Assembly: GCA_013416795.1 (NCBI GenBank)
Contig: RQSC01000019.1
Span: 211,736-275,735, forward strand
DNA: 64,000 bases
Reading direction: 5' to 3'
Origin: Prasinococcaceae sp. CCMP 1430
Lineage: Eukaryota > Plantae > Prasinodermophyta
This document shows, piece after piece, positions 9,010 to 53,587 of this stretch (its first letter is position 1; each line of letters opens with the position of its first letter). The translations under genes and the position numbers were made by a program. A model generated the notes under the pieces. That model did no database searches. It saw nothing but the letters and a program-made list of their open reading frames with translations, and was not told the DNA's origin.

Positions 9010-9059
9010 GGTTGTGCGCGCGAGCAAGCGCGCGCGCGGGCGCGCGCGGGCCGCCGCCG

Positions 9060-15430: not shown

Positions 15431-15951
15431 CCGGCGGCGCCCCTCGCGCCGCGCGGCGCTCCGCCGACGCGCCGCTCGCCGTGCGCCGTGTGCCGCGCCC
15501 CGCGCCCGCGCGCGTTGCGGCGGATCCACCTTCTGCTGATGGCACGATAACTAGCTCCTGTCCCGATCGAGAACCCTACCCAAAACACCAAAACCCAAAC
15601 ACGGACAATCTGTTTGTGGCTGGCGTGTGCGCACCCCGTGGCGCGCGCGCGTTCGGCGCGCCCTTATCGTCATTTATCGGCCTCGCGCGGGCGGGCGCGC
15701 GGGCGGGCGCTAGGCGCGCACTGCGGCGCCCCGTGGGGCCAGCCGCGCGGCTCCCGCACGAGGGCACCCTCCACCTTCGTGCCTGCAACAAGCACGGCAT
15801 CCCCCCCGCGCGCCACCGCGCGCGCATGACGTGCTGCTGTGGGAGCCAGAAAGTGGAACTTAATGGCCACCCCTTCCTATCCGAGGGGAGAAAGGGCCAG
15901 GGGGGAGAGGTGAGGCCGCCGCGCCTGTGCCGCAACTCCGAAGGTCCGCGC

Positions 15952-16540: not shown

Positions 16541-16626
16541 CGGCGGCGAAACGGGGCAAAAATTGGGACGGAGGGTGCTGCTCAGTGGCTCCGCCCGTGC
16601 CACACGCCGAGCATGGGCGGGCACGC

Positions 16627-17438
16627 ATGGTCGACGGTGCCGTAAGCGCCGCCGGCGCGGCCGCTCGCGCCGCTCGAGCGCTCGCGCTTGCGCGCTCGCG
16701 CAGCGTGCTCAACGCGGCGGAGGCGGCCCCGAGCGCGGAGCTCGAGCTCGCGCTGGACTGCGTGCAGGCGCTCGTCGCCGACGAGGGGGTGCGCTGGGCC
16801 GCCGACCTGCAGCCCGCCGATGCCGACGAGCATTTCGGTGATATCCTACGCGATGCCGCGGACGTTCCGCACGATGAGGCGGCAGACTTTGCGAGCGAGC
16901 TGAGGCGCGCCTGCAGAGAGGTGTGTGCGCCGCCGCATGCGCCCCCTCTGCGTGCGCCCGCGGTGGCTTAGCTCTGGCGCGGGTGCACAGTGGTGAGCGG
17001 AGGCGTGCCTCGACAACGCGCAAGCAAGCGCGCTCTCGCTAACGTAGCACCCCATCCCCATGCGCGATGGATAAGGTCGCGCGCGAGCACGAGGCTGCTG
17101 AAGCAGAGCGAGACGCCCTCCCTGCGGGCAGCTGCGCGCTGTGCGAGCGCGTGATGCCGACCACCCGGCACCACCTACACCCGCGCGACGAGCACGCGCG
17201 GCTGCTCCGGCGTGGCGTGAAGACGCGCGCCCAGCTGAACGCGACCGTGCCTATGTGCCGCCCCTGCCACGACTGCGTGCACGAGCACATATCAAACGCC
17301 GACCTGGCTGACGTGTACAACAGTGTCGAGAAGCTGCTCGAGTGCGACAGCATCCACCGCTTCGCGAGGTGGGCGTCCACGCAACGAGCGCGGAAGATGG
17401 CTGACGGCCACGACGTGAGTCTCAAGTACGCCAAGTGA
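16627..17438 (+). CDS. YisB-like HNH-fold zinc-binding protein; probable 5' exon 16627-~16922 and main exon ~17048-17438
   Basis: CALCERVMPTTRHHLHPR...CRPCHDCVH...YNSVEKLL...FARWASTQR follows the CxxC/HH/CxxCH pattern. Acceptor ctaacgtag ends at 17047. Confidence 0.7.
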
Positions 17439-17742
17439 GCAACTGCTGAAAGGGTGAGGCAGCTGTGCGACGCGGCGAACTTAGAGAGGGAGGGGGATAG
17501 ATCGCCTTGTGAAAATTATGTACGATACCTATCAGACTGCGCCGAGCGCGACCGGCCGGCATGCCGACCTATCAGCTCCCGCGCTGGCTTTCCCGCGCTG
17601 TCAGTAGCGTGCTTTCCAGCAGCGAGGCAGAGAGTGACGAAATGCCAGAGGGCTCACAGTCATTACTCTGTCGCATTGCTGTCTCCTATAACCATCCATC
17701 TTGAAAAAATTGCGCACCGTGCGCGAGTTTTGCTAGCCGCGC

Positions 17743-20700: not shown

Positions 20701-22603
20701 GAACTGCAAGTTTGAGCGCTTGGGCTTGCTGAAGCGATCGGTGGGGTCGTTGGCGCCCTTGTCCTTGCCGGTGAACCTGCTGTAGAGCGACTCGGCGAGC
20801 GTGGACGCGTCTGCCTTAGGGAAGACGCACTGCTCGTCGAGGATGGCCACGATGCCCAGCCGCTTCTCGATGAGGTCGAGCACGTCCTGGTTGTCGACGA
20901 AGTCAATGTACGACCAGTCGATCTCCTCCTTCTCGTACTCCTCCTGCTCCTTCTTGAAGACGTGGCCGTTGAAGTGCTGCTGCAGCTTCTCATTTGCGAG
21001 GTTGATGCAGAACTGCTCGAACGAGTTGGTCTCGAAGGACTCAAAGCCGTAAATATCCAGAACGCCGATGAAGCACTGGGCGGATGCGTCCTGTCCGATG
21101 GTCGTGTTGATGCGCGCCACGAGCCAGTCGAAGGTGCGCTGGTAGAGGAACTTGGCCAGCGCGTCCTTGCTCGCCGTCGCTGCGTCAGGAGCCATGGGCT
21201 TGATGATCTCCTCGCCCACGGTGACCACCTTGCGCGTCGTCACGGCGCGCACCAGCGAGTCGACGTCCGTTCCGAGGAGTCGCGCGGCCGCCTCGGCGGC
21301 GGCGGCCGCCTCCGGCGCGAGCACCGAGCCATCCTCGGTACCGTCCGCCTCGACGAACGCGACGCTCCCGAGGTGGAGCACGGTGGCGACCATGGCGAAG
21401 ACGTCCTCCTGCTGCTCCGGCGTGATCCCCACGATCTCCATGGCGCGACGCGTGTGTTCGAACTCCGCGGCGTTGGGCATGTCGTCGATGTCGGTGCAGG
21501 TCGAGTTGCGCAGGTAGCCGTAGTCGAAGGAGCCGGCCGGCAGCGCATACCTCTCCCTCTGCTCGTCGGTCGCGCCCGCGCACAGCTGGTAGAAGATGTG
21601 GTACGAGCGCTCCGGATCGTGGATGCCAATGACGCGCGAGCGCTCGAGCAGGTACGTGCGGATCGCCGCGCCCGAGATGGCGCCCCCGGCGTTGAATTGA
21701 ATCTCCATGAATTTGCCGAAGCGGCTCGAGTTGTTGTTGCGCACGGTCTTGGCGTTGCCGAAGGCCTCCAGCAGCGGGTTGGACTCGAGGATCTTCACCT
21801 CGACCGACCGCTCGCCGCCGTCGGTCGCGCCCGCCTTTTCAGAGTGGCCGCCCATGTACGCCAGGTACTTCATGATGAGCTTCGCGGTCTCCGTCTTGCC
21901 CGCTCCCGACTCGCCCGAAATGAGGATGGACTGCGAGGCGGGGCGGTCGTCGTCGCGCATGAAGCGGTACGCCTCGTCAGCGATGGCGAACACGTGCGGG
22001 CTGAGCTCGCCGAGCTCGGCGCCCCGGTATTCGTCCATCATCATCTCGCTGTACAGGTGCGGCAGCCGCTGGAAGGGGTTCACGGCGATGAGGATGCTGC
22101 CCGTGTACGTGTAAATCTCGTCGAGTGCGTAGCGCTGCTTCAGGTTGTGCAGCACGCCGGGCTCGTGCAGGTAGCTGAGCTTCACCATGTCCTCCACGGT
22201 CGCGTTGCCGAGATTCTGCAGCGGCGCATCCGCCGCGGGCAGGGTGACCTGCGGGTGCGCGCGCGGCCGGCAGCGGTCAGCGCCGCGCGCCGCGGACGCT
22301 CCCCCCCCCTCCCATCCCCTCCACCCCCACGCCCCAGGCGGAAGTCTCGCGCCTCCCCCCAGGCGCGCGCCCGCGTGCGCGCGCATCATCTCCACCGCCG
22401 CGACGGCCCGCGCGCGACCGCACCTCTTTGCCTCCGTCGAGCTTGACTGTGACCGCGCCCGCCGCATCATCGACGGTGAGCACCTCGCCGGGCACCCACG
22501 CCGCGTCGCTGTCCTTGTCCTCTATCCACACCTTGGATCCCACGGAGTGCGCCGTCACCGTGTCCTTGGCCATCTCTGCGGAGTCCTCTCCGCCGTCCGC
22601 CAT
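17743..22603 (-). CDS. Myosin class XI (SH3-like, motor, IQ repeats, coiled coil, DIL); exons 22603-22424 and 22248-17743
   Basis: GESGAGKT, NNNSSRFGKF, DIYGFE, HYVRCIKPN, several IQ motifs and the DIL tail FSNGEYVKTGLAELESW. 175-bp GTGCGG...GCAG intron. Confidence 0.97.
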
Positions 22604-24755
22604 GCCGGCCGCGGGACGGCCGCGGCCGGCGCTCCGCGGGACGGCCGCCCGGCTCATGGCGCTCTCTCGCGCGCATGGCCGCCACGCCTCGCCGCGCGGG
22701 CCATTTCGCGCACGCCGAGTCCGCGAATTCGCCCGCGCGTTTTTTGCGCGCGCGGCCCGCCGCGGTTTCCGCTCGCTGGCCCCCCTCCCCGCGGAAGCGC
22801 CGGTCGGCGCCCGCCTCCGCGCGCGAGGCCGGAAAAAAAAAAGGACCGCAGCCGGCGCGATCCCCCATCGTTTCCTCGGTGTCTCCCGCCCTTCAGGCGC
22901 GGCGCGCGAGGGGGGTTGACAGGCGAGTGGCGGGGATTTGATGGGGGCTGTTCGTCGACAGACCGATCGATCGATTGATTGATGCAACGGGCGGCAGCGA
23001 ACGAGCGCCAACCAAAAAACACCGTCGCAAAAAATGTCAAAAAAAAAGTGTGTCGTACAGTGTACAGTGTAACCTAAACATATTTCGGGTATTTTATGCG
23101 GAGGGTGTTCGTATGATAATGTGATTACATGTAATCATGGACCCTGATGGTTCCACGCCGCCGTTGGCCCGAAATCGCGGGCCGGCGCGCGCGCACCCGC
23201 GCGCGCCCCGCGGGGCCGCGGCGGCCCGCGTTCGAATTTCAATGGCCGGCGGATGGAAAATCGACGACGCGCGCGCCCGCGCGCGCGCGAAAACGCGGAA
23301 CGGGATTCGGATCCATAACCGGTCGATCGGTCGATCGCGCGCGCGCCAACCAAAAACGCGCACCGGCCGGCAGCAGCACCACAAAAAAAAAACGCATCCA
23401 ATGATGGATGTGGAATTGATTGATGAGAAAGAATTAAAAAAAAAAACTCAAAAAAAAGGGAGAGCTGCTGCTGCTGCTGTTGCCCTGTCTGTTACTACGC
23501 GCGTCTGCCGAGCAACAGCCATCCCATCCATCCCTCCATCCCAAATGCAATTTGATTGCCCAACCATCGGCCGGAGCAAAACGCCCGCACGCGCGCGTTC
23601 GGCCCCACCCCCGCGTCGTGCGCCAAGGGCGGAGGACACCGGCGAAATGATGGGGGAAAATGCCGCCGGCCGGCTGGCTGGATCGATCGAGCGGGCTTTT
23701 TTGTTGAGGGAATGCGGGGCTGTTCGCTCGATCGATCGATCGACCGGCCGGCACCGGGGTCCGCAGACTGCAGGATCGGTGGGGTGTTTCAGGTCACGTC
23801 ACTGCTGTTGCACCTTACGACGATTTTGGGTCATTTTGTAGGGTTTAGGAAGTGTGAGGAGGCCGGAGGTGCGTTGCGCGTTGCGGTTGCGTCCATCAGA
23901 GCGCAGTGCGTTTTTCGGATGCGTTTTGATGGGTTCCCCGCCGCGCGCGAGCGCACGCGCGGGGCGAGGGCGAGGGCGCGCGGCGACGCGGCGCCGGGGG
24001 TGNNNNNNNNNNNNNNNNNNNNNNNNNNNNNNNNNNNNNNNNNNNNNNNNNNNNNNNNNNNNNNNNNNNNNNNNNNNNNNNNNNNNNNNNNNNNNNNNNN
24101 NNNNNNNNNNNNNNNNNNNNNNNNNNNNNNNNNNNNNNNNNNNNNNNNNNNNNNNNNNNNNNNNNNNNNNNNNNNNNNNNNNNNNNNNNNNNNNNNNNNN
24201 NNNNNNNNNNNNNNNNNNNNNNNNNNNNNNNNNNNNNNNNNNNNNNNNNNNNNNNNNNNNNNNNNNNNNNNNNNNNNNNNNNNNNNNNNNNNNNNNNNNN
24301 NNNNNNNNNNNNNNNNNNNNNNNNNNNNNNNNNNNNNNNNNNNNNNNNNNNNNNNNNNNNNNNNNNNNNNNNNNNNNNNNNNNNNNNNNNNNNNNNNNNN
24401 NNNNNNNNNNNNNNNNNNNNNNNNNNNNNNNNNNNNNNNNNNNNNNNNNNNNNNNNNNNNNNNNNNNNNNNNNNNNNNNNNNNNNNNNNNNNNNNNNNNN
24501 NNNNNNNNNNNNNNNNNNNNNNNNNNNNNNNNNNNNNNNNNNNNNNNNNNNNNNNNNNNNNNNNNNNNNNNNNNNNNNNNNNNNNNNNNNNNNNNNNNNN
24601 NNNNNNNNNNNNNNNNNNNNNNNNNNNNNNNNNNNNNNNNNNNNNNNNNNNNNNNNNNNNNNNNNNNNNNNNNNNNNNNNNNNNNNNNNNNNNNNNNNNN
24701 NNNNNNNNNNNNNNNNNNNGACCGCTTCCCTGCGGCTGCGCCAGATCCCGCCGCG

Positions 24756-37443: not shown

Positions 37444-37755
37444 GCCAAACCAACACCGCACACGTGCGCACGCAACCCACCTACACCCAACCGCATCATC
37501 GACGCTCGCGCACACACGCGCGCAGCGAAGCGAAGCCAATCCCGATGGGCGCTCAACACAGGAGGGCGCCGCGCTGAAAGTGGCGGCAGGCAAGAATCTG
37601 CGCGCTCGGCCGTGCGTATGCGCGCAGCACCAACTCCGCTGGCTGGCCTGCCGAGTTGCATGTATGAGTAGGGAGAGAAAGTAGAGATCACTCTAGTAGA
37701 GAGGAAGAGCACGAGTGGTAGAAGAAGTACATTATTGTATAAGAATGTCGACACC

Positions 37756-39891
37756 TCATGCCACTCCCGCGGGCATCGCGGCATGCGCCACCTCCATGGC
37801 GCCTGTCGACGGGGCTGCCGCCACAGTGGCCTCGGAGGCGCCCACCGGCGCCGGCCCCTTCCTGCCGTTGCCAAGGAGCGAGATGGTCTCCAGACCTTTC
37901 ACCGACGCCTGGATTGGCGACAGCGGCGAGCGCGCGTCGGGACCCTCACACGCATCGAGCGCGCGCGCGGAGTGTTGCCTCAATGCGGTCGCCTGCGTGC
38001 CGTCTGCGTCGCTCTCGCGCGTCGCGAGCGTCGGGCGTCCTCCGTCGGTGTCCCCCCCGGCTGTCCACTCCTTGAGAGCGCGCAGCTCCTCGCGCTCGAG
38101 CTCCAGGCGCTCGCGCTGGCGCTTCAGGCGCTCCTCATCGGCGGCAGACTGCACCTCCAGCGCCTTGATGGTAGCGAGGAGCGACAGTGCGCGCGCGCGG
38201 CGTCGCTCGCGGGCGTCATGCGCAGCACGCTGGCGCGCGGCGAACTCGAGCGTCACGCCGCTCACGAGTTCGGGGATGCGCGCGATATCCATGCCAGCAG
38301 CGGAGAGAACCTGCGCGCCCGCGCGGGCGCCCACCGTGTGAGCGAGCGCTGCACGCGCGCGCAGGGCGTGCGCGCCGAGCTCGGATCCTGCATCGGGGTG
38401 CGCCCACGGCGCCGGGAGCGGCTGCAGGTGCACCAGCTGCAGAAGCCACAGGTCCGAGAGGGCGCGCGTGCCGTCCCAGCCACCGAAGGCAATCGCGGAT
38501 GCCGCGCCGGCGGATACCGCAGCGGCGTGCGACCGCGCGCAAGGGCCCGCCGCGCCGACGCCCACGTCAATCGGGCCGCGTGCACCACCCCCAGTAGAAT
38601 CGGCTGGCCCTTCGCCATCGCCACACGCGCACTCACTCACCAGCGCGCCTTCCCGTGTAGCCACGCCCTCGACCGCGGCCCCGCCGCCGCCCGCTCCTTC
38701 GCCCGGCAGCGTCGCGAGCATAGTGTCGATAGCCTCCGCGTAGCACCTGTGACTGCTCGGATTCATCGCGCCGTACATCGCGGCCGCGTCGGCGCTGAGC
38801 GCCGCGGTCGCGTCGGACGCGCCGGCGGCACCCACCGCCGCTTCGAGGGCGAGCACCTCCGAGTCGGGCATCGCGTGGCCGAAGAGCGCAAACAGGCGGC
38901 GCGGGCCGAAGCTGTGGGCGCCCGCGCCCGCGCCGCCTGCGCCGTCTTCGCCGCCCAACGCGACCGCACAGTGGCCCATGCGCGCGCCCACGCCCTTGCA
39001 CGGTCGCCGCCGCCAGCGCATCTCGACCAGGTCGAGCGTGAAGACCGCGTCACTCGGCCCGCGCGGGCTGGCGCCGCCCGAGAGGACGAGCTGCCAGCCA
39101 TTCGCCGTGAGCGCGTGCCCCGACACCGGTGGCAGCTCGGCGTCCCCCGCCACCGCAGGCCTCGACCAGTGCATGCGCTCGAGGTCGAGCACGTAGAGGT
39201 CGGCCAGTCGCTGCTCGCCGTCGTAGCCGCCTACCACTACCATGGCGCTCGAGGAGATCATGCAGGCCGCGTGTCCCTCGCGCGCGCAGGGCGCCTCGCC
39301 CGTGCACGCCAGCTGGCGCCACGCTCCGCCTGCCAGGTCGTACGCGCAGGGGTGCGCCAAGAGGCACCCAGAGCTGCGACCGCCGAAGACGACGACGCTG
39401 CTCTGCGCCGCCCACAGCACGGCGCTATGAAATGCGCGCCCGCTGAAAGCGCGCCAGCCCTGCGCGCCCCCCTGCGCGCCGTTCACCCGCTCCCACTTCA
39501 TCGACGTGAGGTCCAGCCACCACCCCTCCGCGCTGCCGGTAGGCTCCTCAGCCGACACGCCGCCGAGCACCAGCAGCGCGTCGCGTGGCGCGGCCGCGGC
39601 GCCGAGGGTGTCCACACATGCGCGCCTGCACGCCGTCATGGTGTGGCCGTACCTTCCCGCGGGCGCTCCGCCGCCGCCGCCGCCGCCGCCGGCGCGCACG
39701 CGCACCTGGGCGCGTCGCCCGCCGCGACCGCCATCGCCCGCCGCGACGTCGCCTCGAGCTCCAGCGCCACATCGCCCACCGCCATCGCCTCCTCGCGCCC
39801 CCTTGCCCCAGCGGCCTTGCGGCCGCCGGCTGGGGCGCTCGCCGGCTCGCGCGCCCGATGTGGCTCCCTCCCTCCCTCCCTCCCGCGCCAC
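37756..39891 (-). CDS. Kelch-repeat protein with C-terminal coiled coil
   Basis: RYGHTM...LLVLGG, AFHSAV...VVVFGG, AREGHAA...VVVGGYDG, VSGHAL...LVLSGG, RMGHCA, RSHAAA...IAFGGWDG. Internal introns are not excluded. Confidence 0.75.
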   Translation of the reverse strand: MAREGGREGATSGARAGERPSRRPQGRWGKGARGGDGGGRCGAGARGDVAAGDGGRGGRRAQVRVRAGGGGGGGGAPAGRYGHTMTACRRACVDTLGAAAAPRDALLVLGGVSAEEPTGSAEGWWLDLTSMKWERVNGAQGGAQGWRAFSGRAFHSAVLWAAQSSVVVFGGRSSGCLLAHPCAYDLAGGAWRQLACTGEAPCAREGHAACMISSSAMVVVGGYDGEQRLADLYVLDLERMHWSRPAVAGDAELPPVSGHALTANGWQLVLSGGASPRGPSDAVFTLDLVEMRWRRRPCKGVGARMGHCAVALGGEDGAGGAGAGAHSFGPRRLFALFGHAMPDSEVLALEAAVGAAGASDATAALSADAAAMYGAMNPSSHRCYAEAIDTMLATLPGEGAGGGGAAVEGVATREGALVSECACGDGEGPADSTGGGARGPIDVGVGAAGPCARSHAAAVSAGAASAIAFGGWDGTRALSDLWLLQLVHLQPLPAPWAHPDAGSELGAHALRARAALAHTVGARAGAQVLSAAGMDIARIPELVSGVTLEFAARQRAAHDARERRRARALSLLATIKALEVQSAADEERLKRQRERLELEREELRALKEWTAGGDTDGGRPTLATRESDADGTQATALRQHSARALDACEGPDARSPLSPIQASVKGLETISLLGNGRKGPAPVGASEATVAAAPSTGAMEVAHAAMPAGVA

Positions 39892-40196
39892 TGCGCCACT
39901 GCGCCACTCCCTCGGCCTGTGCCCCCTCGCAACCGTACGCGGAGCAGGGCGAATCTACGGAAAAGTCATCCGCGTACACACCATTTCAATCCATTGGAAT
40001 CAATTCAGAACTTCCATCCGAAATGCAATCCGCGGGCTGCAGGTCGTCGGTCGGAGAACGCAGGCGGGCGAAACGGGAGGGGGGGGGGGGAGGGGAGGTG
40101 CCAGTCGCCTCGCGGCGGCCCCGCGCGAGCGACGACGGCCCCCCTCGCGCGGCTGCTGGGCGTCGTCCCGATCGAGGAGGCCGGCCGAGGCGAGTG

Positions 40197-41804
40197 ATGG
40201 TGTCGTTCCGGGAGGGCGCCGCGCAGCGGCAGCTGTGCTTCGACGCGCCCGCAAGCGTCGAGGGCGCGCACGGGCGCAGGCACGCGGGCAAGGCGACGCG
40301 CAGCGGCATCGGCCCAGAGCTCGTGCCCAGGGCAGATGCGAGCCAGCGGGAGGAATTTGCGGCGGCATATGGGGAGGAGCATGTCGATAAGGACACCGCC
40401 AGCGTGCTGGGGCCTGGCATGGTGCCCACGGCTGAGGGATCGCGCAGGGAGGAGTACTTGAGCGTGTACGGGGAGCAGCACCTAGACAAAGACACCGCCA
40501 GCGTGCTGGGGCCTGGCATGGTGCCCACGGCTGAGGGATCGCGCAGGGAGGAGTACTTGAGCGTGTACGGGGAGCAGCACCTAGACAAAGACACCGCCAG
40601 CGTGCTGGGGCCTGGCATGGTGCCCCTGAGCTCCGAGGTGGTCGAGGCGAACAAGAACGTTCTAAGCAAAATGGAGGGCGGGTGTGAGATCGTGCTCGCG
40701 ATGCGCGCCAACGGCAGCTCGCCTCTGACTGACCCCATCGACAGCGCGACGGAGCGCCTGAGTGTTGCGAGCCTAGGCCGGGCCGAGGTGGGTGGCCCAA
40801 TCTCCGAGTGGGAGCCTGAGGCGGGACCTGCACGTTCGACCGCCCAAGACGCGTATGGGCACGGCTCAGCGGACGTGCGCGGCTCTGGTTTACCGCGTCG
40901 TGGGCGGCCGGCTGGCGCGCGGCCTGGCAGCCATTGCGCGCCACGGCAGCGGCTCGATCCAGCCTCGTTGCCAGCGGCAGGCCTGTCGCCGGCGGCGGCG
41001 CGTGCGCACTCGGCAGAGATGAGTGGCTATGACGTATCGCGGCAGCGCTGCCGGGACGCCGCTGAGGAGCAGGTGCAGGAGCTGCTTTCACCCGCAGCGC
41101 GCGGCGTGCTCAGCCCGGACGCCTCCGGCCGGACGACCTCGCGTGCGTCTGCCTCGCAGCGCCAGTCGTCGACTCATCAGAACCTCGACCCAGCCTCGTT
41201 GCCAGCGGCAGGCCTGTCGCCGGCGGCGGCGCGTGCGCACTCGGCAGAGATGAGTGGCTATGACGTATCGCGGCAGCGCTGCCGGGACGCCGCTGAGGAG
41301 CAGGTGCAGGAGCTGCTTTCACCCGCAGCGCGCGGCGTGCTCAGCCCGGACGCCTCCGGCCGGACGACCTCGCGTGCGTCTGCCTCGCAGCGCCAGTCGT
41401 CGACGCATCAGACGTACGGCTGGCACTCGGGATACTACGCGCGGGCGGCGCGTTCGAACATCGGTGTGTGGACTGGCGGCGACCATGTGCACGTGCTGCT
41501 GCCGCGACACGCCGCCGCGCCGTGCGAGGCAACGGCAGCCTTCGCCACTACGCGTGACAACCAGCGCGAGGTGTGCGTGGCAGTCATGCAGGGCGCCCGC
41601 CCGCGCGCCTCGGAGAATGCGCTGATGCTCAACGCGGACGTGAGGGTACCTCCCGCGCCAGCGGGCGCGCAGCACGTGGAGATCACGCTGCGCCTCGACA
41701 AAGAGGAGCGATTACACGTCAGAGCGGGGGTCGCAGGTGCCACGAGCGACGCGCTACTGTGGCGCGAGACCGCCGATGGCACGATGGTCCGGGTGCCAGG
41801 GTAG
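40197..41804 (+). CDS. Repeat-containing protein with an isolated C-terminal Hsp70 substrate-binding beta-domain
   Basis: C-terminal VLLPRHAAAPCEATAAFATTRDNQREVCVAVMQGARPRASENALM...VPPAPAGAQHVEITLRLDKEERLHVRA aligns by eye to the Hsp70 SBD (LIPRNT.P....F.T..DNQ..V...V.QGER..A.DN...IPPAP.G...IEVTF.ID..G.L.V.A). No ATPase domain is present. Confidence 0.6.
   Translation: MVSFREGAAQRQLCFDAPASVEGAHGRRHAGKATRSGIGPELVPRADASQREEFAAAYGEEHVDKDTASVLGPGMVPTAEGSRREEYLSVYGEQHLDKDTASVLGPGMVPTAEGSRREEYLSVYGEQHLDKDTASVLGPGMVPLSSEVVEANKNVLSKMEGGCEIVLAMRANGSSPLTDPIDSATERLSVASLGRAEVGGPISEWEPEAGPARSTAQDAYGHGSADVRGSGLPRRGRPAGARPGSHCAPRQRLDPASLPAAGLSPAAARAHSAEMSGYDVSRQRCRDAAEEQVQELLSPAARGVLSPDASGRTTSRASASQRQSSTHQNLDPASLPAAGLSPAAARAHSAEMSGYDVSRQRCRDAAEEQVQELLSPAARGVLSPDASGRTTSRASASQRQSSTHQTYGWHSGYYARAARSNIGVWTGGDHVHVLLPRHAAAPCEATAAFATTRDNQREVCVAVMQGARPRASENALMLNADVRVPPAPAGAQHVEITLRLDKEERLHVRAGVAGATSDALLWRETADGTMVRVPG
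40348..40626 (+). repeat. 99-bp coding tandem repeat, ~2.8 copies (33 aa)
   Basis: Units start at 40348, 40447 and 40546, encoding REEYLSVYGEQHLDKDTASVLGPGMVPTAEGSR. Copies 2 and 3 are identical over their shared length. Confidence 0.95.
40953..41411 (+). repeat. 231-bp coding tandem duplication (77 aa x2), near-identical
   Basis: Copies start at 40953 and 41184 (LDPASLPAAGLSPAAARAHS...QRQSSTHQ). The only differences I spotted are synonymous: gat/gac and act/acg. Confidence 0.95.
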
Positions 41805-41984
41805 GGGCAGTCTCGGGTGGCGGGCGCGCTCCAGTGCAGGCATGTCCGAGGTAATCCAATACAATTTATAAATGTCCTGGCGCTGTGATAACACGAATTC
41901 ATGCATGGACGCGCCCCGGCAGCTGCTGGCGTCGCGGACCTCCGTGGGTGGCGCCGGCTGGGGCGCAGGGCAGTTGCCACCGCC

Positions 41985-42755
41985 TCACGACGGCGGTGCG
42001 AACTTCGGCACAATGGCCAGGGGGCCGGTGCTGTTGTCCAGCCTGATGGGGAGGATTTCCTGGTACGCGGCCGAAGCCTTCCATTCCAGGGCCTTTTCCA
42101 CGGACGTGAAGCCCAAGATGATGCCAAGGTCGAAGTCTTCCTTCGTCGTGCGCTCGTGGTACGCGCCTCCACCCTTGGGGAAAATTGCGCGCATCACGTA
42201 GCCGCCGAAGCCGGCCAGAGTAGCGGGCAATTTGGGCGGGTATCCCATCATCGCAGGATCGGTGATCTTGATGTACCCGCAGAGGAACGCCTGTGGATCC
42301 TCGATCATCGGCAGGCCGTCCGCCTCAGAATCGGCACCCTCCGCGACGATGAGTGGCCCCGTGCTCGCGTCGAGGCGCAGGTTGACGATTTCCTGGTACG
42401 CGGCCGAACTCTTCCACTCCATGGCCTTCTCGACGGAGTCGAACTCGAGCGCCACGACGTAGGTGTAGTCGTCCGCGGTGGTGCGCTCGGCGTACGGGGC
42501 GGGACCCTGCGCGCATCGTGCAGCGGCGTCAGCAAGAGTCGGGGCAGAGGCAGTGGCAGGAGCCGTCGGCGCGGGGCGCATACGCCGCGCGCTGGCGACG
42601 GGCGAGCGCGCCGCGCGCACCTCTGGGAAGACGTGCTTGAGCAAGAGCTTGCCGCCGAAGGGGCCAAGCGTCGGCCCGAATTTGGAGACGTAGTCGCCGT
42701 GCATCTCGGGGTCGTGCACCTTGCCGAAAAGCAAGACGTACCCCTTGCGGCCCAT
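41985..42755 (-). CDS. Tandem DUF1330 (dimeric alpha-beta barrel) protein; exons 42755-42621 and 42506-41985
   Basis: Two copies of the pattern: GYVLLFGKVHDPE..DY...FGG...LEFDSVEKAMEWKSSAAYQEIVNLRLDASTG and LGFTSVEKALEWKASAAYQEILPIRLDNSTG. 114-bp GTGCGC/ctgac/GCAG intron. Confidence 0.78.
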   Translation of the reverse strand: MGRKGYVLLFGKVHDPEMHGDYVSKFGPTLGPFGGKLLLKHVFPEVRAARSPVASARRMRPAPTAPATASAPTLADAAARCAQGPAPYAERTTADDYTYVVALEFDSVEKAMEWKSSAAYQEIVNLRLDASTGPLIVAEGADSEADGLPMIEDPQAFLCGYIKITDPAMMGYPPKLPATLAGFGGYVMRAIFPKGGGAYHERTTKEDFDLGIILGFTSVEKALEWKASAAYQEILPIRLDNSTGPLAIVPKFAPPS

Positions 42756-43211
42756 GGTTGCAGGCAGGCGTGCAACGCTCTTACGTGAGGCTCTGCGAGA
42801 TCCCGCGCGCGGCGTCTGGTGTGGCGCGACCTGCAGCGCGGCGCAGCAGCACGCCCGAGAAAGCAATCTGCCCGCCATCGGCGCTCGGGCGAAGCACGTG
42901 CGTGGGCCCGCGTTTGTGCTGCCCGCCCTCTCGCGCGATCCCCCCCCCCCCCGCGTCCACGCCCGGCACGCGCCCCGTGCGTGCGCGCGCCCGCTAACAA
43001 CGGTAACCGCCGCGCGCGGCGCACCCCAACTGTAACCGATGCGCCGCCCCCTTTTCGCGCCCCGCGAAACCGCCCGCCGCACATCTCCGCGGTCGCGCGA
43101 GCCTTCGGCGCGTGCGAAATTCGGCGGTGGCGGCTGCGAAAAAAAAAGGATTCAGAAAGTCCCTATTTGACCTCAACCTAAATATCTTTGTGATTCAGAC
43201 CCTGAGAGATC

Positions 43212-43239
43212 AAACCCTATTCTGAATGTAAAACCCTAA
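43212..43239 (+). promoter_or_regulatory. Two telo-box motifs (AAACCCTA) in the DUF1330/LST8 divergent promoter
   Basis: aaacccta at 43212-43219 and aaaccctaa at 43231-43239, ~280 bp upstream of the LST8 ATG. Confidence 0.55.
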
Positions 43240-43515
43240 CATGCTCTCCCTCGCCCGGCCTCTGGCAGCGAGGCGGGCTCCACTGCGCGCGCGCGCGGCG
43301 CCCTTCTCTCCCCCACCGCCCGCACACCCACACACACGGCCCCTCGACCTGCGCCTGCCTGAGCCGCGGCGGCGGGGCCCGCCGCCGCCGCCGCCTCGCC
43401 CGTCGAACGTACCCACCCACCCCCCTCCTGTCCTTCGCCCACACGCTTGGGCCGGAATCCGTACGTCCGCGCGCCCGCGCGAACGTACGCGCGCGCGCCC
43501 GTTGCTCGCCCAGCG

Positions 43516-44916
43516 ATGGATGAGCAGCCGGGCGCCGGCGGGGGCGGAGGGGGCGCGCAGGCGCAGGCGCCGCCGCCAGCCGCCGCGGGACAAAACGGCT
43601 ACGCGCCGCACGCGCACGCGCACGCGCAGGAGCAGCACCAGGCGCAGGCGCAGGTGCAGCAGCAGCAGCAGATTCCGCCACCGCAGGTCCAGGCCGCGCA
43701 AGGCGCGCCGCCGCCCGCGCAGCCGCCGCCCACGGTGGTGCTCGCGACCGCCGGGTACGACCACACCATAAAGTTCTGGGAGGCAACAACCGGCGTGTGT
43801 TACCGGACAGTGCAGTATCCAGACTCGCAGGTGAACAAGCTCGCGATCACGCCCGACAAGACGCTGCTCGCCGCGGCGGGCAACCCACACGTGCGGCTCT
43901 TCGACGTGCTCTCGAGCGCGCCGCAGCCCGTGCGCGTGCTCGAGGGCCACACGGGCAACGTGACCAGCGTGGGCTTCGAGGCTGACGCCAGATGGATGTA
44001 CACGGGCTCTGAGGACGGCACCGTGCGCTTGTGGGACCTCCGTGCGCCTGGCTGCCAGCGCGAGTTCGTCTGCCGCGCGGCCGTCAACACCGTCGAGCTC
44101 CACCCGAGCCAGGGTGAGCTCATCTCGGGCGATGGCGCGGGCAACATCCGCGTGTGGGACCTCGCTCAGAACGCGTGTAGCTGCGAGCTCGTGCCCGAAG
44201 TTGATGTGCCCGTCTCGAGCGTCAGCGTCGCCTCGGACGGCTCGCTGGTCGTCGCGGCAAACCACAAGGGCACGTGCTACGTGTGGCAGCTCTCCAAGGG
44301 CACGGGCGCGGCGGACAACGGTCCGGGCTCGACCGCGGCATTCGACCCCCTGCACAAGCTACAGGCGCACGGGCCGGGCTCGGCAGGGTCGCCTGCCGAC
44401 GCTCCACCTGCGTACGTGCTCAAGTGCCTGCTCTCCCCTGACGTGCGCCTCCTGGCCACGGCCTCGAGCGACAAGACCGTCAAACTGTGGTCGCTGGACG
44501 GCTACTCCTTCGAGCTCGAGCGCACGCTGACGGGTCACACACGTTGGGTGTGGGACTGCGCGTTCTCGGTGGATGCATGCTACCTCGTCACGGCGAGGTG
44601 CGGGCTGCGCGAGCGCGCGCGCGCGCGCGCGAGCGCCCTCCTGCATACCCCGGGCGTGCTCGCTCGCGCGTGCTCGCGTTTGACCCAAAGAGGGGCCATG
44701 CGCCGCGCAACCGCGGTGCGATGCTCCCGAGCACGAAGGGCTCTCCTCTGACACCCTCCACCGCTCCTGCCTGCCACCCTCGCGCGCGCGCGGCCGTGCA
44801 GCTCGGACACGAGCGCGCGGCTGTGGGACCTCAGCGGCGACCCGCGCGAGGCAATCAAAGTGTACAGCGGCCACCACAAGGCCGTCACGTGCTGTGCGCT
44901 CAACGACAGCAGCTGA
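43516..44916 (+). CDS. LST8: TOR complex subunit LST8 (WD40); exons 43516-44597 and 44802-44916
   Basis: [60 protein letters not shown]|SDTSARLW...[13 protein letters not shown]. Confidence 0.95.
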
Positions 44917-45109
44917 GCGCGCAAGCGTGCGCCGCCGCAGCCATGTAAGTCCCATGTATACTCCGCCCGCCTGCCTGCGCATGCGCGCAGGGAACGTGCA
45001 GTCCGGCGCGCCCATCCCGCCCAGATGCGCACTTGCAGACGCATGTGTGCGCGCATACGTGTGTTCGTGCCACACAGCGCGCGCGGCGCAGGGCGAGCGG
45101 CGTGCCGCC

Positions 45110-46541
45110 ATGTCTACCGCATTGGCCAGAGTCGGCCTCGCACGGACTCGTGCGGCGCGTGTGCGTGCGCCCTCGCGGGCGCGCCCCCGCGCAGCCGCCA
45201 CGAGCGACGGTGTGGCCGGCGCTGCGGATGCAGACGCGGGCGCGGGCGCGGGCGCGGGCGGCGGCACCCCACCACCGCCGCTGCTCGAGCGCAGCCCCGA
45301 GGAAATTGGCGCGACGATGCTGCGCGCAGCGCTGGGAGTGACGGCTGTCGCGCGCGACGCCGTCGAGCGCCCCGCCGAACTCGAGGCGCGCGTCACTGAG
45401 GCCGCGGACAGCCTTGCCGAGGCGCTGCAGCGGCCAGGCGACCCAGCGGAACGCGCGGTCGCGGCGCTTGGTGTGGCGGCTGCGCAGGTCGACGCGCTGG
45501 CCGCGCGCGCGGATGAGGCGGAGGGTGGGTTGGCGGAGCTCGCCGCGGGTCTTCCTGGCCTGTCGGAGCTCGAAGGACTGGGGGGTGCGGTGGAGGCCGC
45601 GTTTGAGCAAGGTACGCGCACCGGCGCAAGCATGCGTGTTTTCGGCCGCCCTGGGCGAGGCGCTGTGCAGCTAGTCGGCCCTGGCTGCGTGCGAGCGCGC
45701 GCGCGCGCGCGCGCGGGCGCGCGGGCGCGCGTTGTGCAATGCAGTGCTGTCGTTGACCCCGCGTAGCCGGCGTGCCTGTGCCGCCCTCGCCCCCGTTTCC
45801 CTTCCCATCGTCACCCGGCGGGACGTCGGCGAGCACCGCCGCGGGCGGAGCCGCGGACGCAACGGCACGCGGAAATCCCAAGGCGTCGCTGACGGAGGAA
45901 GAGACGCTCGCGGCGCGACAGGCTGCGGCCGGCATCACCGCCACGCGCGAAGCCGTGGGAGCTGCGCGCAAAGCGGCCGACAACGCGGCCGGAAAGAGCG
46001 CGCCCATGCAGCGCATTGCCGTGTCGGATGCGTCGAAGCGCCTGCGCTCGAGGCTGGCTGAGCTCGGTGCGTCGCTGCCCGCGCGCGCCTGATACTGTCG
46101 TCGCTGTGCCCAGCCGCGTACCCTCCCGCGTGAGCTCGCAATTTTGGCGCGCCGCCGTGTGCAAGCGCAGGCGGTGGCAGGGCCTCGATGCATGCGTTCC
46201 TGGAGGGCGCGCGAACACCGCTGACGCCCGCGCGCGAGGGCACGCACTCCGTGGCTCTCGCACATGCACCCACACACATGCTCGCACACCTGACCACACA
46301 TGCACTTATGTGCTCGCTCCCACTCCCGCCCCGCGCGCGCGCGTTTGCACGCTCGCTTGCTCGCGTGCTCGGTCGCTCATTCGATCCCTCATTCGCAGAG
46401 GCCACAAACGTGGAGCGGGCAGGCGCGGCTGAGCTCGCGCCGGCGGTGTCTGCTGCAGTTGACGCCGGCCGCGAGCTGCTGCGCGAGCTCGAGGAGCTGC
46501 AGGACGCCCTCACGGACGCCGCGCGCCGCTCGGCTCCTTAG
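45110..46541 (+). CDS. Hypothetical alanine-rich helical protein with transit-peptide-like N-terminus; about three exons
   Basis: MSTALARVGLARTRAARVRAP... Three coding-like blocks (ORFs 44894..45766, 45772..46092, 46188..46541) are separated by GT...AG introns. Confidence 0.45.
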
Positions 46542-47151
46542 CCATTGAGCCCCGAGCAGGCGACGCAATGGCCGCGCGAGCTTTGCGTATGTAAGCACCG
46601 TGGCAACACACTCGCGTGGCCGTGCTCGCGCTCGCCCCGCGCGCTGCAGGAGAGCTCGCGGGCATGCACACGCAGCATCTGTCTGTGCCATCGCATGTTC
46701 AAAAATGTGTCAAAAATTATCGTCGAAGGCAGGCGCTTTGCGAGGCGGCCCCGCGGGGGACCCAGGGCATAAGGGCGCAGTGCCATTCCCCCCCACACCC
46801 GCCTACCCACCCACTTCCTTCGCGCGCGTCCCGAGGGGTCAGCGGCACGCGCGCTTGCGCCAGCCCGTGGCCGCGCCAAGCGCGAGCGCGCGCTCCGAGT
46901 TGCGTTTAGGGTTGGCAGCATCAAGGCGGCCTGCGAGGCAGGCACACCGTTGTCCCCCGCCCGCGACGCGCGCTGCACACGTGCGTCATCAGGTGGGTGG
47001 TGACGCCGCCTTCCATTGTAGCCTTTTCCTCCACCACGCGCCGGCACGCCGCCCTCAACCTGCCCTTCCGCGACGCTCTGCTCTGCTCGCCTTCATCGCT
47101 GCGCGCCCGCGCCCGGTCCGCCGGCTGCTGCATGGCGACTGCACGGCATGC

Positions 47152-47430
47152 CTACTTCTCGAGCGGGGCGCGCGTGCCGTGCAGTCGCTTCGCGGCGTGA
47201 TCCACGGACATGAATATCCCCGCGGTGGCCGCGAGCACCATGGCCATGTTGACGCACGGCACGCGGATGGCCTTGTTGCGGCCGCTCGCGAGCCAGCCCG
47301 CGGGCACGCCGAGGCCAAGCGCGAAGACCGCAGGGCGCGCGAGCTCGTACGCGGTCATCTCGCGCGGCACGTCGGCGATGGAGAAGTCCTCCGACCCCGC
47401 GTAGGGCTTGACGCTGCGCAGGAACACCAT
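47152..47430 (-). CDS. Small two-TM protein, divergent complex I NUXM (21-kDa subunit N-terminal) family-like
   Basis: VPREMTAYELARPAVFALGLGVPAGW...IRVPCVNMAMVLAATAGIFMSVDHAAKRLHG parallels the plant NUXM pattern ending ...GFMYAYQNSAGRLMG. Confidence 0.5.
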   Translation of the reverse strand: MVFLRSVKPYAGSEDFSIADVPREMTAYELARPAVFALGLGVPAGWLASGRNKAIRVPCVNMAMVLAATAGIFMSVDHAAKRLHGTRAPLEK

Positions 47431-48430
47431 CGCGCCGCGCGCGCGTGCGCGCGCGCCTGGGTCGTGGGAGCACGCGGGCGCCCCGCGGGCGCGCGCGCGA
47501 CACGCCCCGCGAGGCCAGGCCGCGCGACGCCCGCCCGCACGAGCGCCAAAAAAAAAACACCAAAAACAGGCGCGAATAAAAAATGAGGCGGAGGCCAGAA
47601 CGCATGCGATCGGCGCGTGCCCATATCAGAACGGCTGCGGAGGCGCGCCGCGCGCGCGCGCTGCCGGGCCGCGCGCCGTCGGCATCCGGGACGGATTTGT
47701 GCGGTAGACGTCCCCGAAATAACTCCAATTCCGTAATATGTTTTACAGTATACACTCTTTCAAAAGTTCATCCGTAATCTAACACTCAAGATATATTTAC
47801 TTTATATCATCACGTTGGGATGCATAAATTCATCGCGGTTTGTGTGGGGTCAGGCGGTCGCAGATCCGACGCGAAGCGGAGTATTTTCGCGAGCCTTGCT
47901 GTCGGCGCCACGTGCGCGCGCGTGCCGCGCGCGCCACAGCGCGCGCCTGCCCCACGCGGGCGCGGCGCGCCCTCCTCGCTCGCTCCCGCGGGAGGTTATT
48001 GGCTGAGGTGCGTGGCGGCGCGGAGGGCGTTCGGGGCTTGGTTTGAGGGGGGCGCGTCGCGTTCCGCCTCCCCCACCCACCCCCACCCCCGCGCACACAC
48101 CTGTACACGCACCACACGCAGACGGCCCCATCCCTCCCCGCGTTGTGCGTAGGCCCGCGGCGTGCGCGTGTGCCTCGTGCGGCGGACGCTCTTTGCGCGC
48201 CGTGCCGCTCCAGCGCTACGCGGTGCGGTCGAGGACGAGGGTGGGTGGCGGGAAGGGCGGAGGGAGCGGGCGCGAGCATGGTCGGCGGCGGGTGGCGCGC
48301 CTGACTCCGCCGAGGCTGACCCGAGAGCGCGTGCCGCGGCCTCGCCTGCGCCGTGCGCCCAATCATCCGCCCGTTTGCGTGCCCGCCGTGGCGCAGGCAG
48401 ACCCACGCACACGCGTGTGCTGCGGCGACA

Positions 48431-50605
48431 ATGCTGCGCCGACGCGGCGCGGCGGTCGCAGCGGCGCTCGCGAGCACGACCGTCGGGCGCCGCGCGGCGA
48501 GCGGCGTGGGAGCTGGCACTGTGGAAAGCCAATGGCAGCAATGGGGCAGGCTCCGGAGGAGAGTTGCGCAGCGACAGCTGCAGCAGCAGCAGCAGCACCA
48601 GCACCAGCAGGCGCGCCGGTCCTTCTTTCGGAGCAGCGAGGGCAGCGCTGGCGGCGGCGGCGGCGGTGGCGCGTCCGCGTCTGAGTTGCAGTGGCGCGCG
48701 TCGCGACTGGGCACCAACCCGGAGGCGCACAACGGTTTCATGAAGGAGCTCCTGCGCAGCGACGTGGCCGGTGCGATCACCGCCTACGAGAAGGGCCTCG
48801 TGCAGCAGACGCCCGAGACGCTCGCGGCGTACCTGCAGGCACTCGTTGCCGAGGGACGCCTGAATGGCAGCCGACTCGCCGAGGTGTTGCATAAGGGACA
48901 GATGGTGGAGGAGGTTGCGCGGCGGAACGCGAGCGGCGCGGCGGGCGTCGCCGGAGGGAGCGAGCTGGGCAACATCCTCGGGGGCTTCGCCGCGAGCGGC
49001 GCGCGCGGGGCGGCCGGCAGCGCGAGCCAGGCGAAGGGCGCAGCAGGGGGGCTCTTCGGTGGCGGCGCGATGGGCGCCGCGGCGGGACAGCTCGGGTCTG
49101 CGGAGGCGCCCCTGTACTTCACGCAGGCGGAGCCCTCGCTCAGGTCGTACGTCTTCCGGACGATGCGATTTGTGCTGGGCGGCTTTCTGCTGTACTCAGC
49201 GCTCGGCGCTTTCGTCGGGCTCGACGAGAAGGGCGGCGCCGGCGGCATCGCGACACGCCTTGCCGGCGGCAAGAGCGATGCGGTGACGCCTGTCACTGAC
49301 ATCAACACTCGCTTTAAGGACTGCATGGGCGTCGAGGAGGCCAAGGGCGAGCTTGAGGAGGTGGTGCACTACCTGAAGGACCCGGAGCATTTCACCAAGC
49401 TTGGCGGCAAGCTCCCCAAGGGCATCCTGCTCGTTGGCCCGCCGGGCACCGGCAAGACGCTGCTCGCGCGCGCGGTGGCTGGCGAGGCCGGAGTGCCGTT
49501 CTTCTACACGAGTGGCTCCGAATTCGAGGAAATGTTTGTGGGCGTGGGCGCGCGCCGCGTGCGCGAGCTCTTCACGGCCGCCAAGAAGAACTCGCCTTGC
49601 ATCGTCTTCATCGACGAGATCGACGCGATCGGTTCGAGCCGCAATCCAAAGGACCAGCAGTACATGCGAATGACGCTCAACCAGATGCTGGTCGAGCTCG
49701 ACGGCTTCAAGAAGAACGAGGGGATCATCGTGCTAGCCGCCACGAACGTGCCCGAGGCGCTCGACAAGGCGCTGGTGCGCCCGGGGCGCTTCGACACGCA
49801 GGTGGTGGTGCCCAACCCCGACGTCGAGGGCCGCCGCAAGATTCTCGCCGTGCACGCGAAGAAGGTGATCATCGGCAAGAACGTCGACATGCAGATCATC
49901 GCGCGCGGCACGCCGGGTTTCTCGGGCGCTGAGCTGGCCAACCTCATCAACGTTGCCGCGCTCAAGGCGGCAATGGATGGCGCAAAGGCGGTGTCCATGG
50001 CGCACCTCGAATACGCCAAGGACAAGATCCTCATGGGCGCCGAGCGCAAGAGCGCGGTGATCTCGGAGGAGAACCGCCGTCTGACTGCGTACCACGAGGG
50101 TGGCCACGCGCTGGTGGCACTCAACACCGACGGTGCGATGCCCGTGCACAAGGCGACCATTGTTCCGCGCGGTCAGGCGCTGGGTATGGTCACGCAGCTC
50201 CCCGACAAGGACCAGACCTCTGTGTCGCGGCGGCAGATGCTCGCGCGCCTTGACGTGTGCATGGGCGGGCGCGTCGCCGAGGAGATCATTTTCGGCGAGA
50301 AGGACGTCACCAGCGGCGCATCGTCGGACCTCAAGCAGGCCACCGACCTCGCGACGGCTATGGTCACGCGCTACGGCTTCTCGGACAAGGTCGGGCTTGC
50401 ATCCGCCGACCGGTCGTCGCTCTCAGGGGAGATGCGCAAGCTCGTGGATGAGGAGGTCAAGCGCATGCTCAACGAGGCCTATGAGCGCGCGCGTGGCGTG
50501 CTCATGAAGCACGAGAAGGAGCTGCATAAGCTGGCGAACGAGCTGCTTGAGAAGGAGACGCTGGACGCGAAGCAGCTCAAGGAGCTCGTCGGCTCCAAGG
50601 CGTAG
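48431..50605 (+). CDS. FTSH4: Mitochondrial i-AAA metalloprotease FtsH4/YME1
   Basis: [46 protein letters not shown], with a mitochondrial-type presequence. Confidence 0.95.
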
Positions 50606-50790
50606 TCGAGAGCGCAGCCGGCGGGATAACGAGAGGCGGCGGCTCGCACTCTTTACTCACTGCGACACGACCCGAGAGATCTTTCGTCCCGTAACGTACA
50701 ATACACTCATTTCATCAAGGGCGACCGCACTCACGCTCGCGCGCAAGTTTGCGCATGTGCACGCGCGTGTACACTCAATAGAGAAACAAG

Positions 50791-52914
50791 TTACACGACC
50801 CGCAGCTGCGGCCCGTCGTCGGCGTCGACGCCCTCCTTGCCTACGACGCACACCACCTGTTTCCCGCAGTCGCCCTCCTGGACGACCCCCGCCGCCTTCG
50901 CGAACGCAACCGCGCGCTCCACTAGCGCCTTGGTGACAAGGTCGTGCCTTCCGCCCGCCTGGCACACGAAGTCCGCCTCGTCAACTAGCAGCGGTACCTG
51001 GCCAAAGCTGCCCATAGTGGCCGCCACAGTGCGTTTGGAGGGCGTGACGACCACCTGCGGTGCGCTGGGGCGATACTTGGACACCAGCGCCGACATGTCG
51101 CCGCGCGCGGTGACTACCACTACGAGGCCCGCCTTGCCGTCGATGGCCGCCTTGGCGGCACTGCTTGCCACGCTTTCGGCCACGCTCAGCGGCTTGGGCG
51201 CTGTGAAGTCGCGCATGACGCTCATCTTGGTGTAGTAGTCGAGCGCAAGCTCCGCACTGGCGTTGATGCGCGCCATCGTGCGCACGGCGTCGGCGGGGAA
51301 GGCGCCGTTGGCCGTCTCGCCAGACAGCATGGTGGCGTCCGTGCCGTCGAACACCGCGTTCGCCACGTCGGTCATCTCCGCTCGCGTGGGCAGCGGGTTG
51401 GAGATCATGCTCTCCAGCATCTGCGTGGCCGTGATGACAAACTTCCCAGCAAGGTTGGCCTTTTGGATGAGCATCTTCTGTGCGAGCGGTACCTTCTCAG
51501 CAGGAATCTCCATTCCATCCAGCGGAGCGCGGTGGTAGTGCGGCAGGCAGAGGAGCTCCTAGAGCAGTTTCATCTGAAGCGCCTCCTCGTTCTCGATCTT
51601 GCTGATAATCTGGATGTCCGCGCCTCCGTTCTCGTCAAGCACCCTGCGAATGAAGCGCACGTCCTCGCCGCTCTGCACAAAGCTCGCCGCCACGAAGTCG
51701 ACGCGTACGAACGTCGGCTTCAACTGGTCCAGCAGCTACAGGAAGAGCCACTCGTGCCCAATGTCCACCTTGATGCCCGGCAGGTTGCAATTCTTGCGCT
51801 CGCCTAGCTTCTTGCTGACCAAGCACGTCGCGCGCAGCTCGCGATCGCTAAGAATTTCTTCCACCCGCAGGCTGATGGTGCCGTCGGCGATGAGGATGCG
51901 GTTGCCGGGTTTGACGCTCTGGCAGAGCTTGTCGTACGACAGGCCGATGCGCGTCTCCTCGTCCGTCTTGTAGCCCTCGAAGGTCGTATACGCCGCGCCC
52001 GCCGCCTCCACGATGACAGTCTCGCCCTTCTCGAGATCGATGCGCTTGTGGTCCCTGAGCATGGCCGTGCGAATCTCGGGGCCCTTGGTGTCGAGCAGCG
52101 CCGCCGCATACGGGTTCTTCGCAGCCGCAGCCTTGCGGAATCGCTGCAAGACCTCGAGGTGGCCCTCGTGCGAGCCGTGCGAGAAGTTCATGCGCGCGAC
52201 GTCCATGCCCGCATCCAGTAGCTGATGCATGGTCTCCTCGTCCCAGCACTTAGGCCCCATGGTGCATACGATCTTCGTCTTGCGCTCGGTGCGTATGTCC
52301 GACGAGAGCATCATCGGGCTCACTCGCACCAGGCCCTCGATGTTGATCGTGTCATCCTGCTGGGGCGGCACCACCGACTCTGGCGCGTATTCAGGTACCC
52401 ACCGCGTATTCTGTTTGTAATTTTCCTTGAGCTCATGCTTGGAAGACACGCGGCGCACCAGCGAGGGCCTCTCTTGGAGGTCGAGCAAGGCGCTGCTCTC
52501 GGCGCGCTGCACGGCGGCGGGAAAGGCAGGCCGCGGCGGCGAGCGGGTCGCGCATGGCGAAGCGCGCCGTCAGCCGTCGCTTCGCAGGGGCCAGGCTCGC
52601 GGCCTGCGCTTTCGCACAGGCGAGCGCCTGGGGCGCAGGCGCGGGGAAAGCGCGAGGGGCGCACGCGCAGGGCGTCGCAGCGCCATCGTGCACGGCGTGG
52701 GCAGTCGTGCGCGCGCGCGCCCACGACCACAGCGATGACGGACCTTCAGGCGACCCTTCGAGAACGTGACTTCGTTTTCAAGCAGCTCCTCGTCGAGGCC
52801 GCCGTTGAGGAACCCCATTGAGCCCACCTTCCTGATGCGCATCGAGCCCTCTGACTTGTCCACATCGGTGCTCGCGCCACTCGGAGCGCCCGCCTTCACC
52901 TGGGACGGCGCCAT
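50791..52914 (-). CDS. pyk: Pyruvate kinase; exons 52914-52744 and 52506-50791; two in-frame stops fall inside complemented patches
   Basis: TKIVCTMGP, ARMNFSHG, LLDTKGPEIRT, NCNLPG, SKIENEE, TATQMLESM, PTRAEMTDVANAVFDGTDATMLSGETA. ORFs 51736..52512 and 50791..51513 share one frame. Confidence 0.95.
51518..51572 (-). other. 55-nt complemented (not reversed) patch B in pyruvate kinase
   Basis: Reading the plus strand backwards, 51572 to 51518, gives ac ttt gac gag atc ctc gag gag acg gac ggc gtg atg gtg gcg cga ggc gac ct = (N)[17 protein letters not shown](L). Confidence 0.95.
51705..51759 (-). other. 55-nt complemented (not reversed) patch A in pyruvate kinase
   Basis: Reading the plus strand backwards, 51759 to 51705, gives ccc gtg ctc acc gag aag gac atc gac gac ctg gtc aac ttc ggc tgc aag cat g = [18 protein letters not shown](G). 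Confidence 0.95.
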
Positions 52915-53587
52915 TTTGTCGGACGCGCTCGCGCCCGCCTGCTTTGCGGCCTGGCGGGCGCCGCGCGCACAGGGTCAGCATGCGCCCTCCCTCCGGCCCA
53001 TTGCGTCTGCTGCCTCGGCATCGCCCCTTCTTCCATCTCCGCGGAGTTCCCGCGCACGCGATTGAGGGCGCGCGCGCTCGCCGGCCGGCTGTCGCTCGCG
53101 AAGCATCGCGGCCCATGCCTGCGCTCGCGGTGGCCGCCCGCGCTCGCAGCGCCGCTCCCCGCGCACCGGCCGCGCGCAACGCGCGCACCCGCGCCTAACG
53201 CGCGCACCCGCGCCCAGGCGCCGCGCCTTGCACTCACGCACACATCCACACGCGCACGCCACAGGCGATCGCGATCGCGATCGCGATCGCGCCAGGGGGG
53301 GGGGGGGAGGAGCGGGAAGCAGGCGGAAGGGGAGAAGAGAAGGCGCGCGCGCTGATGCCGCCGCCAGCCGCCGCTGCCGTGCAGGCCTGGAACGGCACGC
53401 ATTGCGCGGGGGAGGGGGGCGATCGGGGCCGGTCACGGGCGCTCACGCAGAGGAACCGGTGTCCACACCTCGCCATGAGCTCGCGCGCTGACACCCGTCG
53501 CGATTGCCTGCCACACGCGCACCACCCGCTGTGTCGTTGCCCCCCTGCTGCCCTGGCACTCCGGCGGCAACGCCTGCTGCTGAATAG

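Follow-up and report, generated by a model that had tools for sequence, protein, structure and literature searches.

The window analysed here is a stretch of 64,000 nt from Prasinococcaceae sp. CCMP 1430 (assembly GCA_013416795.1, contig RQSC01000019.1, positions 211,736 to 275,735). It has a G+C content of 69.5%, carries compact genes and is interrupted by scaffold gaps. It also contains single N letters (Table 1); joins of this kind typically come from scaffolders that place contigs end to end when no overlap has been found. As such, they hint at the pipeline behind the assembly, which might also have made the anomaly that is the subject of this report. This anomaly affects a gene for pyruvate kinase (PK), which lies beside an intact gene for an FtsH-like protease. 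The best named relatives of both proteins are found in green algae and plants, and the sequence is present in marine metatranscriptomes, in line with a marine green alga.

Table 1. Features of the window, with positions counted from its first letter (nt).
Feature	Position	Strand	Remarks
Scaffold gap	9060-9317		258 N
Scaffold gap	13763-13771		9 N
Scaffold gap	24003-24719		717 N
Single N	31420, 36694, 59222
Intact mitochondrial FtsH4/5-like protease gene	48431..50605	+	PK neighbour; anchor for fetching independent contigs
Unit-4-derived part of printed PK	50791..51517	-	Barrel end, PK_C, stop codon; 58-60/60 per bin to L077 unit 4
Base outside patch 1	51517	.	A in the window; C in both L077 units
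242-nt segment common to PK units 1 and 4 (repeat node)	51518..51759	.	Its first and last 55 nt are the patches
Patch 1	51518..51572	.	55 nt of natural sequence, complemented in print but not reversed
Patch 2	51705..51759	.	55 nt of natural sequence, complemented in print but not reversed
Base outside patch 2	51760	.	A in the window; G in both L077 units and in the organism's DNA contig
Unit-1-derived part of printed PK	51760..52458	-	N-terminal leader, first barrel half; 58-60/60 per bin to L077 unit 1

As printed, the PK gene runs on the minus strand in a frame that closes at the stop codon at 50791, and it is broken by two in-frame TAG codons and two stretches of residues that do not belong to PK. 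Patch 1 contributes a TAG at 51559-51561 and masks 19 PK residues, patch 2 a TAG at 51736-51738 and 18 masked residues (both TAGs read on the minus strand). Accordingly, the printed gene matches the Pfam PK profile (PF00224) in three pieces, at profile positions 2-171, 189-231 and 252-328 (158, 43 and 132 bits, cut-off 30), followed by the PK_C domain (PF02887; 55 bits, cut-off 28), and the profile positions left without a match are those of the two patches. When each base of both patches is replaced by its complement in place, which we refer to as decoding in the following, both TAG codons disappear and the minus-strand ORF 50791-52512 becomes a continuous PK, as a preliminary description of this DNA had claimed. 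The active-site stretch MVARGDLG is absent in the printed reading and present after decoding. The 132 nt that separate the patches (51573-51704) are printed correctly.

Independent sequences of this locus are available. The FtsH-like protein is 100% identical to an entry in public assemblies (P0121), the contigs of which include L077 and L078. L077 is a 22.9-kb scaffold from a TARA Oceans metagenome that is 96.7% identical to positions 38416-52097 of the window and represents a close relative, a strain other than that of the window; its positions 17654-19804 match 51228-53377. We compared the patches with this scaffold without gaps, between anchors, as gapped alignment through the patches is misleading: BLAST and global aligners add gaps and return about 50% identity. 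In the ungapped comparison, both patches are the complement of L077 in register (55/55 twice), not its reverse complement, and the only further differences in the patch region are the single bases 51517 and 51760. Chance is negligible as a cause of complement-type letters at 110/110 positions against an independent sequence. The preliminary description of two 55-nt patches in PK that are complemented but not reversed is therefore exact. Its statement that no indel is involved agrees with the equal spans of L077 and the window across both patches. The length of 55 nt it gave also stands, but the tolerance of +/-1-2 nt that it attached to the boundaries does not, as the borders are exact against both L077 and the contigs of the organism's own DNA discussed below.

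More distant relatives give a similar picture. Two environmental PK genes (L012 and L013, about 74% identity) agree with the decoded patches at 43/55 and 44/55 positions, a level like that of the flanks, versus 20/55 (patch 1) and 19/55 (patch 2) for the printed letters. Likewise, the residues of the decoded patches recur almost unchanged in a 75%-identical protein from a catalogue of marine eukaryotes (P0001). A search of JGI metagenome contigs with the C-terminal piece of the gene returned no contig of the same species, only relatives at 88% or less, and a protein search with the N-terminal piece returned no model of this genome within the length range searched. A protein that is 98% identical to the N-terminal piece (P0005) ends before patch 2. 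The 240-aa ORF at the C-terminal end is without a record in public gene calls, which is uninformative about the printed form; the same applies to a 1,575-aa ORF elsewhere in the window (17746-22470), likewise without a record and uninformative.

The organism's own DNA speaks directly to the printed letters. In 14 DNA runs, all from one organism, 0.96 of the sampled 31-mers of 49500-53500 are present. The missing share of about 4% corresponds to the cost of the patches alone, because two patches of 55 nt destroy about 170 of the ~3,970 words (4.3%). The stretch 50400-52800 was compared with X1 and X5, which are two of the DNA runs, and with the marine metatranscriptomes X15 and X17, a type of data in which the sequence is also present. 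In the Logan contigs of X1 and X5, the printed letters of the patches have a depth of 0 (e.g. at 51525-51552), where it should be kept in mind that such contigs drop rare variants and hence show presence but do not prove complete absence. The Logan contigs of the organism's DNA cease to fit the window at 51517|51518, 51572|51573 and 51704|51705: a 151-nt contig matches up to 51517 and continues with 30 unlike letters, and a 221-nt contig is exact over 51573-51704 and then carries 55 and 34 unlike letters on its two sides. These overhanging letters are the in-place complement of the printed ones, at 30/30 positions for the loose end in patch 1 and at 30/30 and 29/30 for those in patch 2, the sole exception being base 51760. 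The loose end before 51573 thereby restores MVARGDLG in the organism's DNA contigs as well.

The two bases that flank the patches deserve a separate remark. At base 51517, the strain probably has a true variant, which creates a branch point of the assembly graph; a contig of the organism fits 51397-51517 with 0 other letters, at a depth below that of the single-copy flanks. Base 51760 is either a variant site that closes the graph node or a further wrong letter of the artefact; complementing gives no explanation for its A versus G.

These data bear on the most far-reaching idea of the preliminary description, a new kind of encrypted gene, in which the printed letters would be real genomic DNA that is decoded or repaired before or during expression. 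Such a model also predicts decoded RNA, and this is what we see: for an RNA contig of X15, which was aligned with gaps, the letters rebuilt from the listed differences are the complement of the first 29 nt of patch 1 at 29/29 positions. Beyond this, nothing speaks for an encrypted gene except the printed assembly itself. Against it, the decoded form is the one present in the organism's DNA contigs, with a depth of 0 on the printed letters, and in the metagenomic DNA scaffold L077. To our knowledge, no chemistry gives an un-reversed complement in duplex DNA. Known decoding systems, such as RNA editing, scrambled ciliate genes and programmed frameshifts, likewise involve genes that look broken and encode a conserved protein, but there the genomic DNA carries the cryptic form, whereas here it carries the normal one. 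We therefore set the encrypted gene aside as next to impossible, and consider it exceedingly improbable that real molecules with the printed letters exist at all. A real inversion was also considered and rejected. Biological DNA inversion, be it by site-specific invertases or by recombination between inverted repeats, similarly leaves a short internal segment with changed polarity relative to its flanks, but it yields the reverse complement; the patches are complemented in place at 55/55 positions twice, which is impossible for duplex DNA, and are absent from the organism's contigs.

What the preliminary description missed is that the whole gene is mis-assembled: an array of PK units, four in tandem as judged by L077, has been collapsed into one. 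In L077, the corresponding gene (12355-18885, minus strand) is a single ORF of 2,176 aa with four units, each of a PK barrel and PK_C, and MVARGDLG is found in 4/4 units. This architecture is a conserved trait of green algae. It is also present in Chlamydomonas, Volvox, Haematococcus, Raphidocelis, Monoraphidium, Ulva, Mesostigma and relatives from marine metagenomes, in proteins of about 2,100-2,500 residues. Like the gene of L077, that of Chlamydomonas reinhardtii (CHLRE_05g234700v5, about 2,300 aa) comprises four units in one ORF, and the L077 protein is about 50% identical to such green-algal proteins in alignments that cover 93-100% of its length; a search of the literature for the Chlamydomonas four-unit PK found nothing specific. 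Unlike these genes, the window prints a one-unit chimera with the head of unit 1, the tail of unit 4 and two false stops.

The composition of this chimera can be traced along the gene. Its unit-4-derived part, which covers Pfam PK positions 252-328 and PK_C, agrees with units 1-3 of L077 at only 22-57/60 per bin, and its unit-1-derived part, which covers Pfam PK positions 2-171, agrees with unit 4 at 37-55/60 per bin beyond 51800 (compare Table 1). Between them, the decoded segment 51518-51759 agrees with both units 1 and 4 at 59-60/60 per bin, the lone mismatch being base 51517. Overall, the left of the decoded gene is 100% unit 4, from the stop codon to about 51750, and the right is 100% unit 1, starting near 51511 and reaching the N-terminus. 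L077 contains two exact copies of window 51573-51704, at 13137 and 18000, which are 4,863 nt apart. The printed contig thus goes into the common stretch via the unit 4 side and out via the unit 1 side, so that an in-frame stretch of 4,863 nt (1,621 codons) is lost. The missing PK units were not found elsewhere within the window. In L077, units 1 and 4 share about 290 nt of identical sequence but are different in the rest, a sequence pattern that hints at gene conversion between the units.

Given that the omitted stretch is a whole number of codons, it could be argued that the strain truly has a single-unit PK that arose by natural recombination of units 1 and 4, and that only the patches are artefactual. 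The chimera is indeed in frame and, once decoded, would encode a complete PK, just as unequal recombination would give. Such an event would, however, have deleted the continuation of unit 4, and this continuation is present in the organism: for 51766-51892 and 51980-52098, its DNA runs hold another version beside that of the window, comparable to it in depth, and this other version is identical to unit 4 of L077 at 21/21 diagnostic sites. As the skipped part of unit 4 exists in the organism, the collapse is an assembly error, too. Furthermore, the conserved parts of PK have a summed depth 3-6 times as high as the single-copy flanks, and green algae at large have kept the four-unit gene. With this, a natural single-unit gene appears very unlikely. 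We also observed a 7,589-nt contig in X1 that matches only pieces of the PK gene (51284-51432), at about 84% identity, and that seems to skip 342 and 360 nt in between. Probably, this contig holds PK units 2 and 3, or else another PK paralog.

Considering all this, we interpret the patches as assembly errors that arose at the collapse of a tandem repeat by the assembler, and assign a probability of roughly 0.94 to this reading. Its core is that the printed letters are absent from the contigs of the organism, that the sensible, decoded letters are present and that the site coincides with the ends of a repeat node, which together mark an assembly artefact. As regards the assembler, its k and the actual fault, we infer the following. 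The segment 51518-51759 would be one node of a de Bruijn-type graph, common to two paths and bounded by branch points, and the neighbouring pieces of the graph would overlap this node by 55 nt (k=55, or k=56 with overlaps of k-1). At the repeat node, the stored reverse-complement twin may have supplied the overlap strings, which would then have been reversed but not complemented. Plain complement would then stand in the patches because reversing a reverse complement without complementing it yields just that.

Ordinary repeat collapse in de Bruijn graphs has much in common with this case: it likewise enters a repeat from one copy and exits into another, with the loss of what lies between (here 4,863 nt), and its breakpoints coincide with branch points, as they do here with those of an independent k=31 graph, in which a contig built from the same reads starts exactly at 51518. 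The difference is that ordinary collapse leaves correct letters, whereas here the 55-nt ends of the node were also written as un-reversed complement. We found no description of such a signature in the literature searched. The preliminary description had itself favoured an assembler or scaffolder that wrote k-mer-length overlaps in the wrong polarity, and had named reads with the decoded sequence as the mark of an artefact. Both points are borne out, by the Logan DNA contigs, which carry the decoded and never the printed form, by the RNA contig and L077, and by the position of the patches at a repeat-collapse junction; the encrypted gene that it had offered as the alternative is refuted by the same contigs.

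An in silico change made after assembly and unrelated to the graph, for instance by a file-processing error, by a polishing or gap-closing script or as a deliberate perturbation, would equally explain a purely textual effect, complement in place, and the lack of read support for the printed letters. It does not account for the location. The patches are the exact 55-nt ends of the 242-nt segment shared by units 1 and 4, right at the collapse junction, and a Logan contig begins exactly at 51518; changes made without regard to the graph would not fall on this site. Such a change is accordingly improbable, and we maintain assembly error at the collapsed repeat as the preferred explanation.

The search for further patches covered the window's coding regions and two stretches for which independent sequence is available. 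No further patches are present in 38416-53377 (against L077) or in 5280-9056 (against L079), nor did two statistical scans reveal any in the coding regions; as these were the parts covered, patches may still lie in non-coding DNA beyond them. In a scan of codon statistics and in one for stops in coding frames, the sites of the two patches rank 1st and 4th in the whole window. With coding context taken into account, the codon scan yields nothing in the window that decodes sensibly besides the PK patches. A codon log-likelihood scan without coding context was discarded as too noisy: AT-rich intergenic sequence, for instance at 6103-6235 and 37649-37702, outscored the true patches. A BLAST comparison of the complemented window with itself returned low-complexity matches only, and no paralog within the window exposes more patches.

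Several other observations were made along the window. The AT-rich islands at 6103-6235, 37649-37735 and 5923-5976, situated between GC-rich genes, owe their high complement-versus-printed codon score to composition only, and probably represent promoters or UTRs rather than patches. Apart from the patch region, the window differs markedly from L077 at only three spots, 43600-43665, 45690-45720 and 47771-47808, none of which is a complement block; they are length differences (95 vs 65, 60 vs 48 and 67 vs 68 nt) in apparently low-complexity stretches. Tandem duplications were noted at 40368-40625 and 40953-41412, with off-diagonal matches at 99 nt and 231 nt and 94-98% identity; they sit within a gene that is called HSP70-like in the gene table of L077, and are candidates for further assembly trouble. 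Lastly, L079 (JGI 3300016765, Ga0186520_100370) covers all 3,777 nt of 5280-9056 at 100% identity and stops 3 nt short of the gap at 9060-9317; it probably derives from the same strain, either as a transcript or as a contig, and may be a source of more same-strain sequence against which to check the assembly.

It is an even bet whether a single software fault, triggered each time a path passes through a repeat or variant node, has left its signature in the un-reversed complements. If so, each block of this kind, perhaps also in other public assemblies from the same pipeline, would mark a repeat collapse or mis-join, and the blocks would provide a cheap, read-free detector of mis-assemblies and falsely broken genes. 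A systematic fault would affect many genes of this genome that contain repeats, and mirror blocks should in that case be taken as flags of mis-assembly, not as discoveries. The practical value of the patches thus lies in a quality-control warning on this assembly and, possibly, in a read-free marker of its mis-joins.

For the biology of the organism, the patches hold no novelty. The real gene is an ordinary, intact PK, of four units as judged by L077, that requires no cellular decoding, while the assembly shows this conserved glycolytic enzyme of 2,176 aa as a one-unit gene with two false stops, which annotation based on the printed sequence would call a pseudogene, a set of fragments or a gene with false introns.
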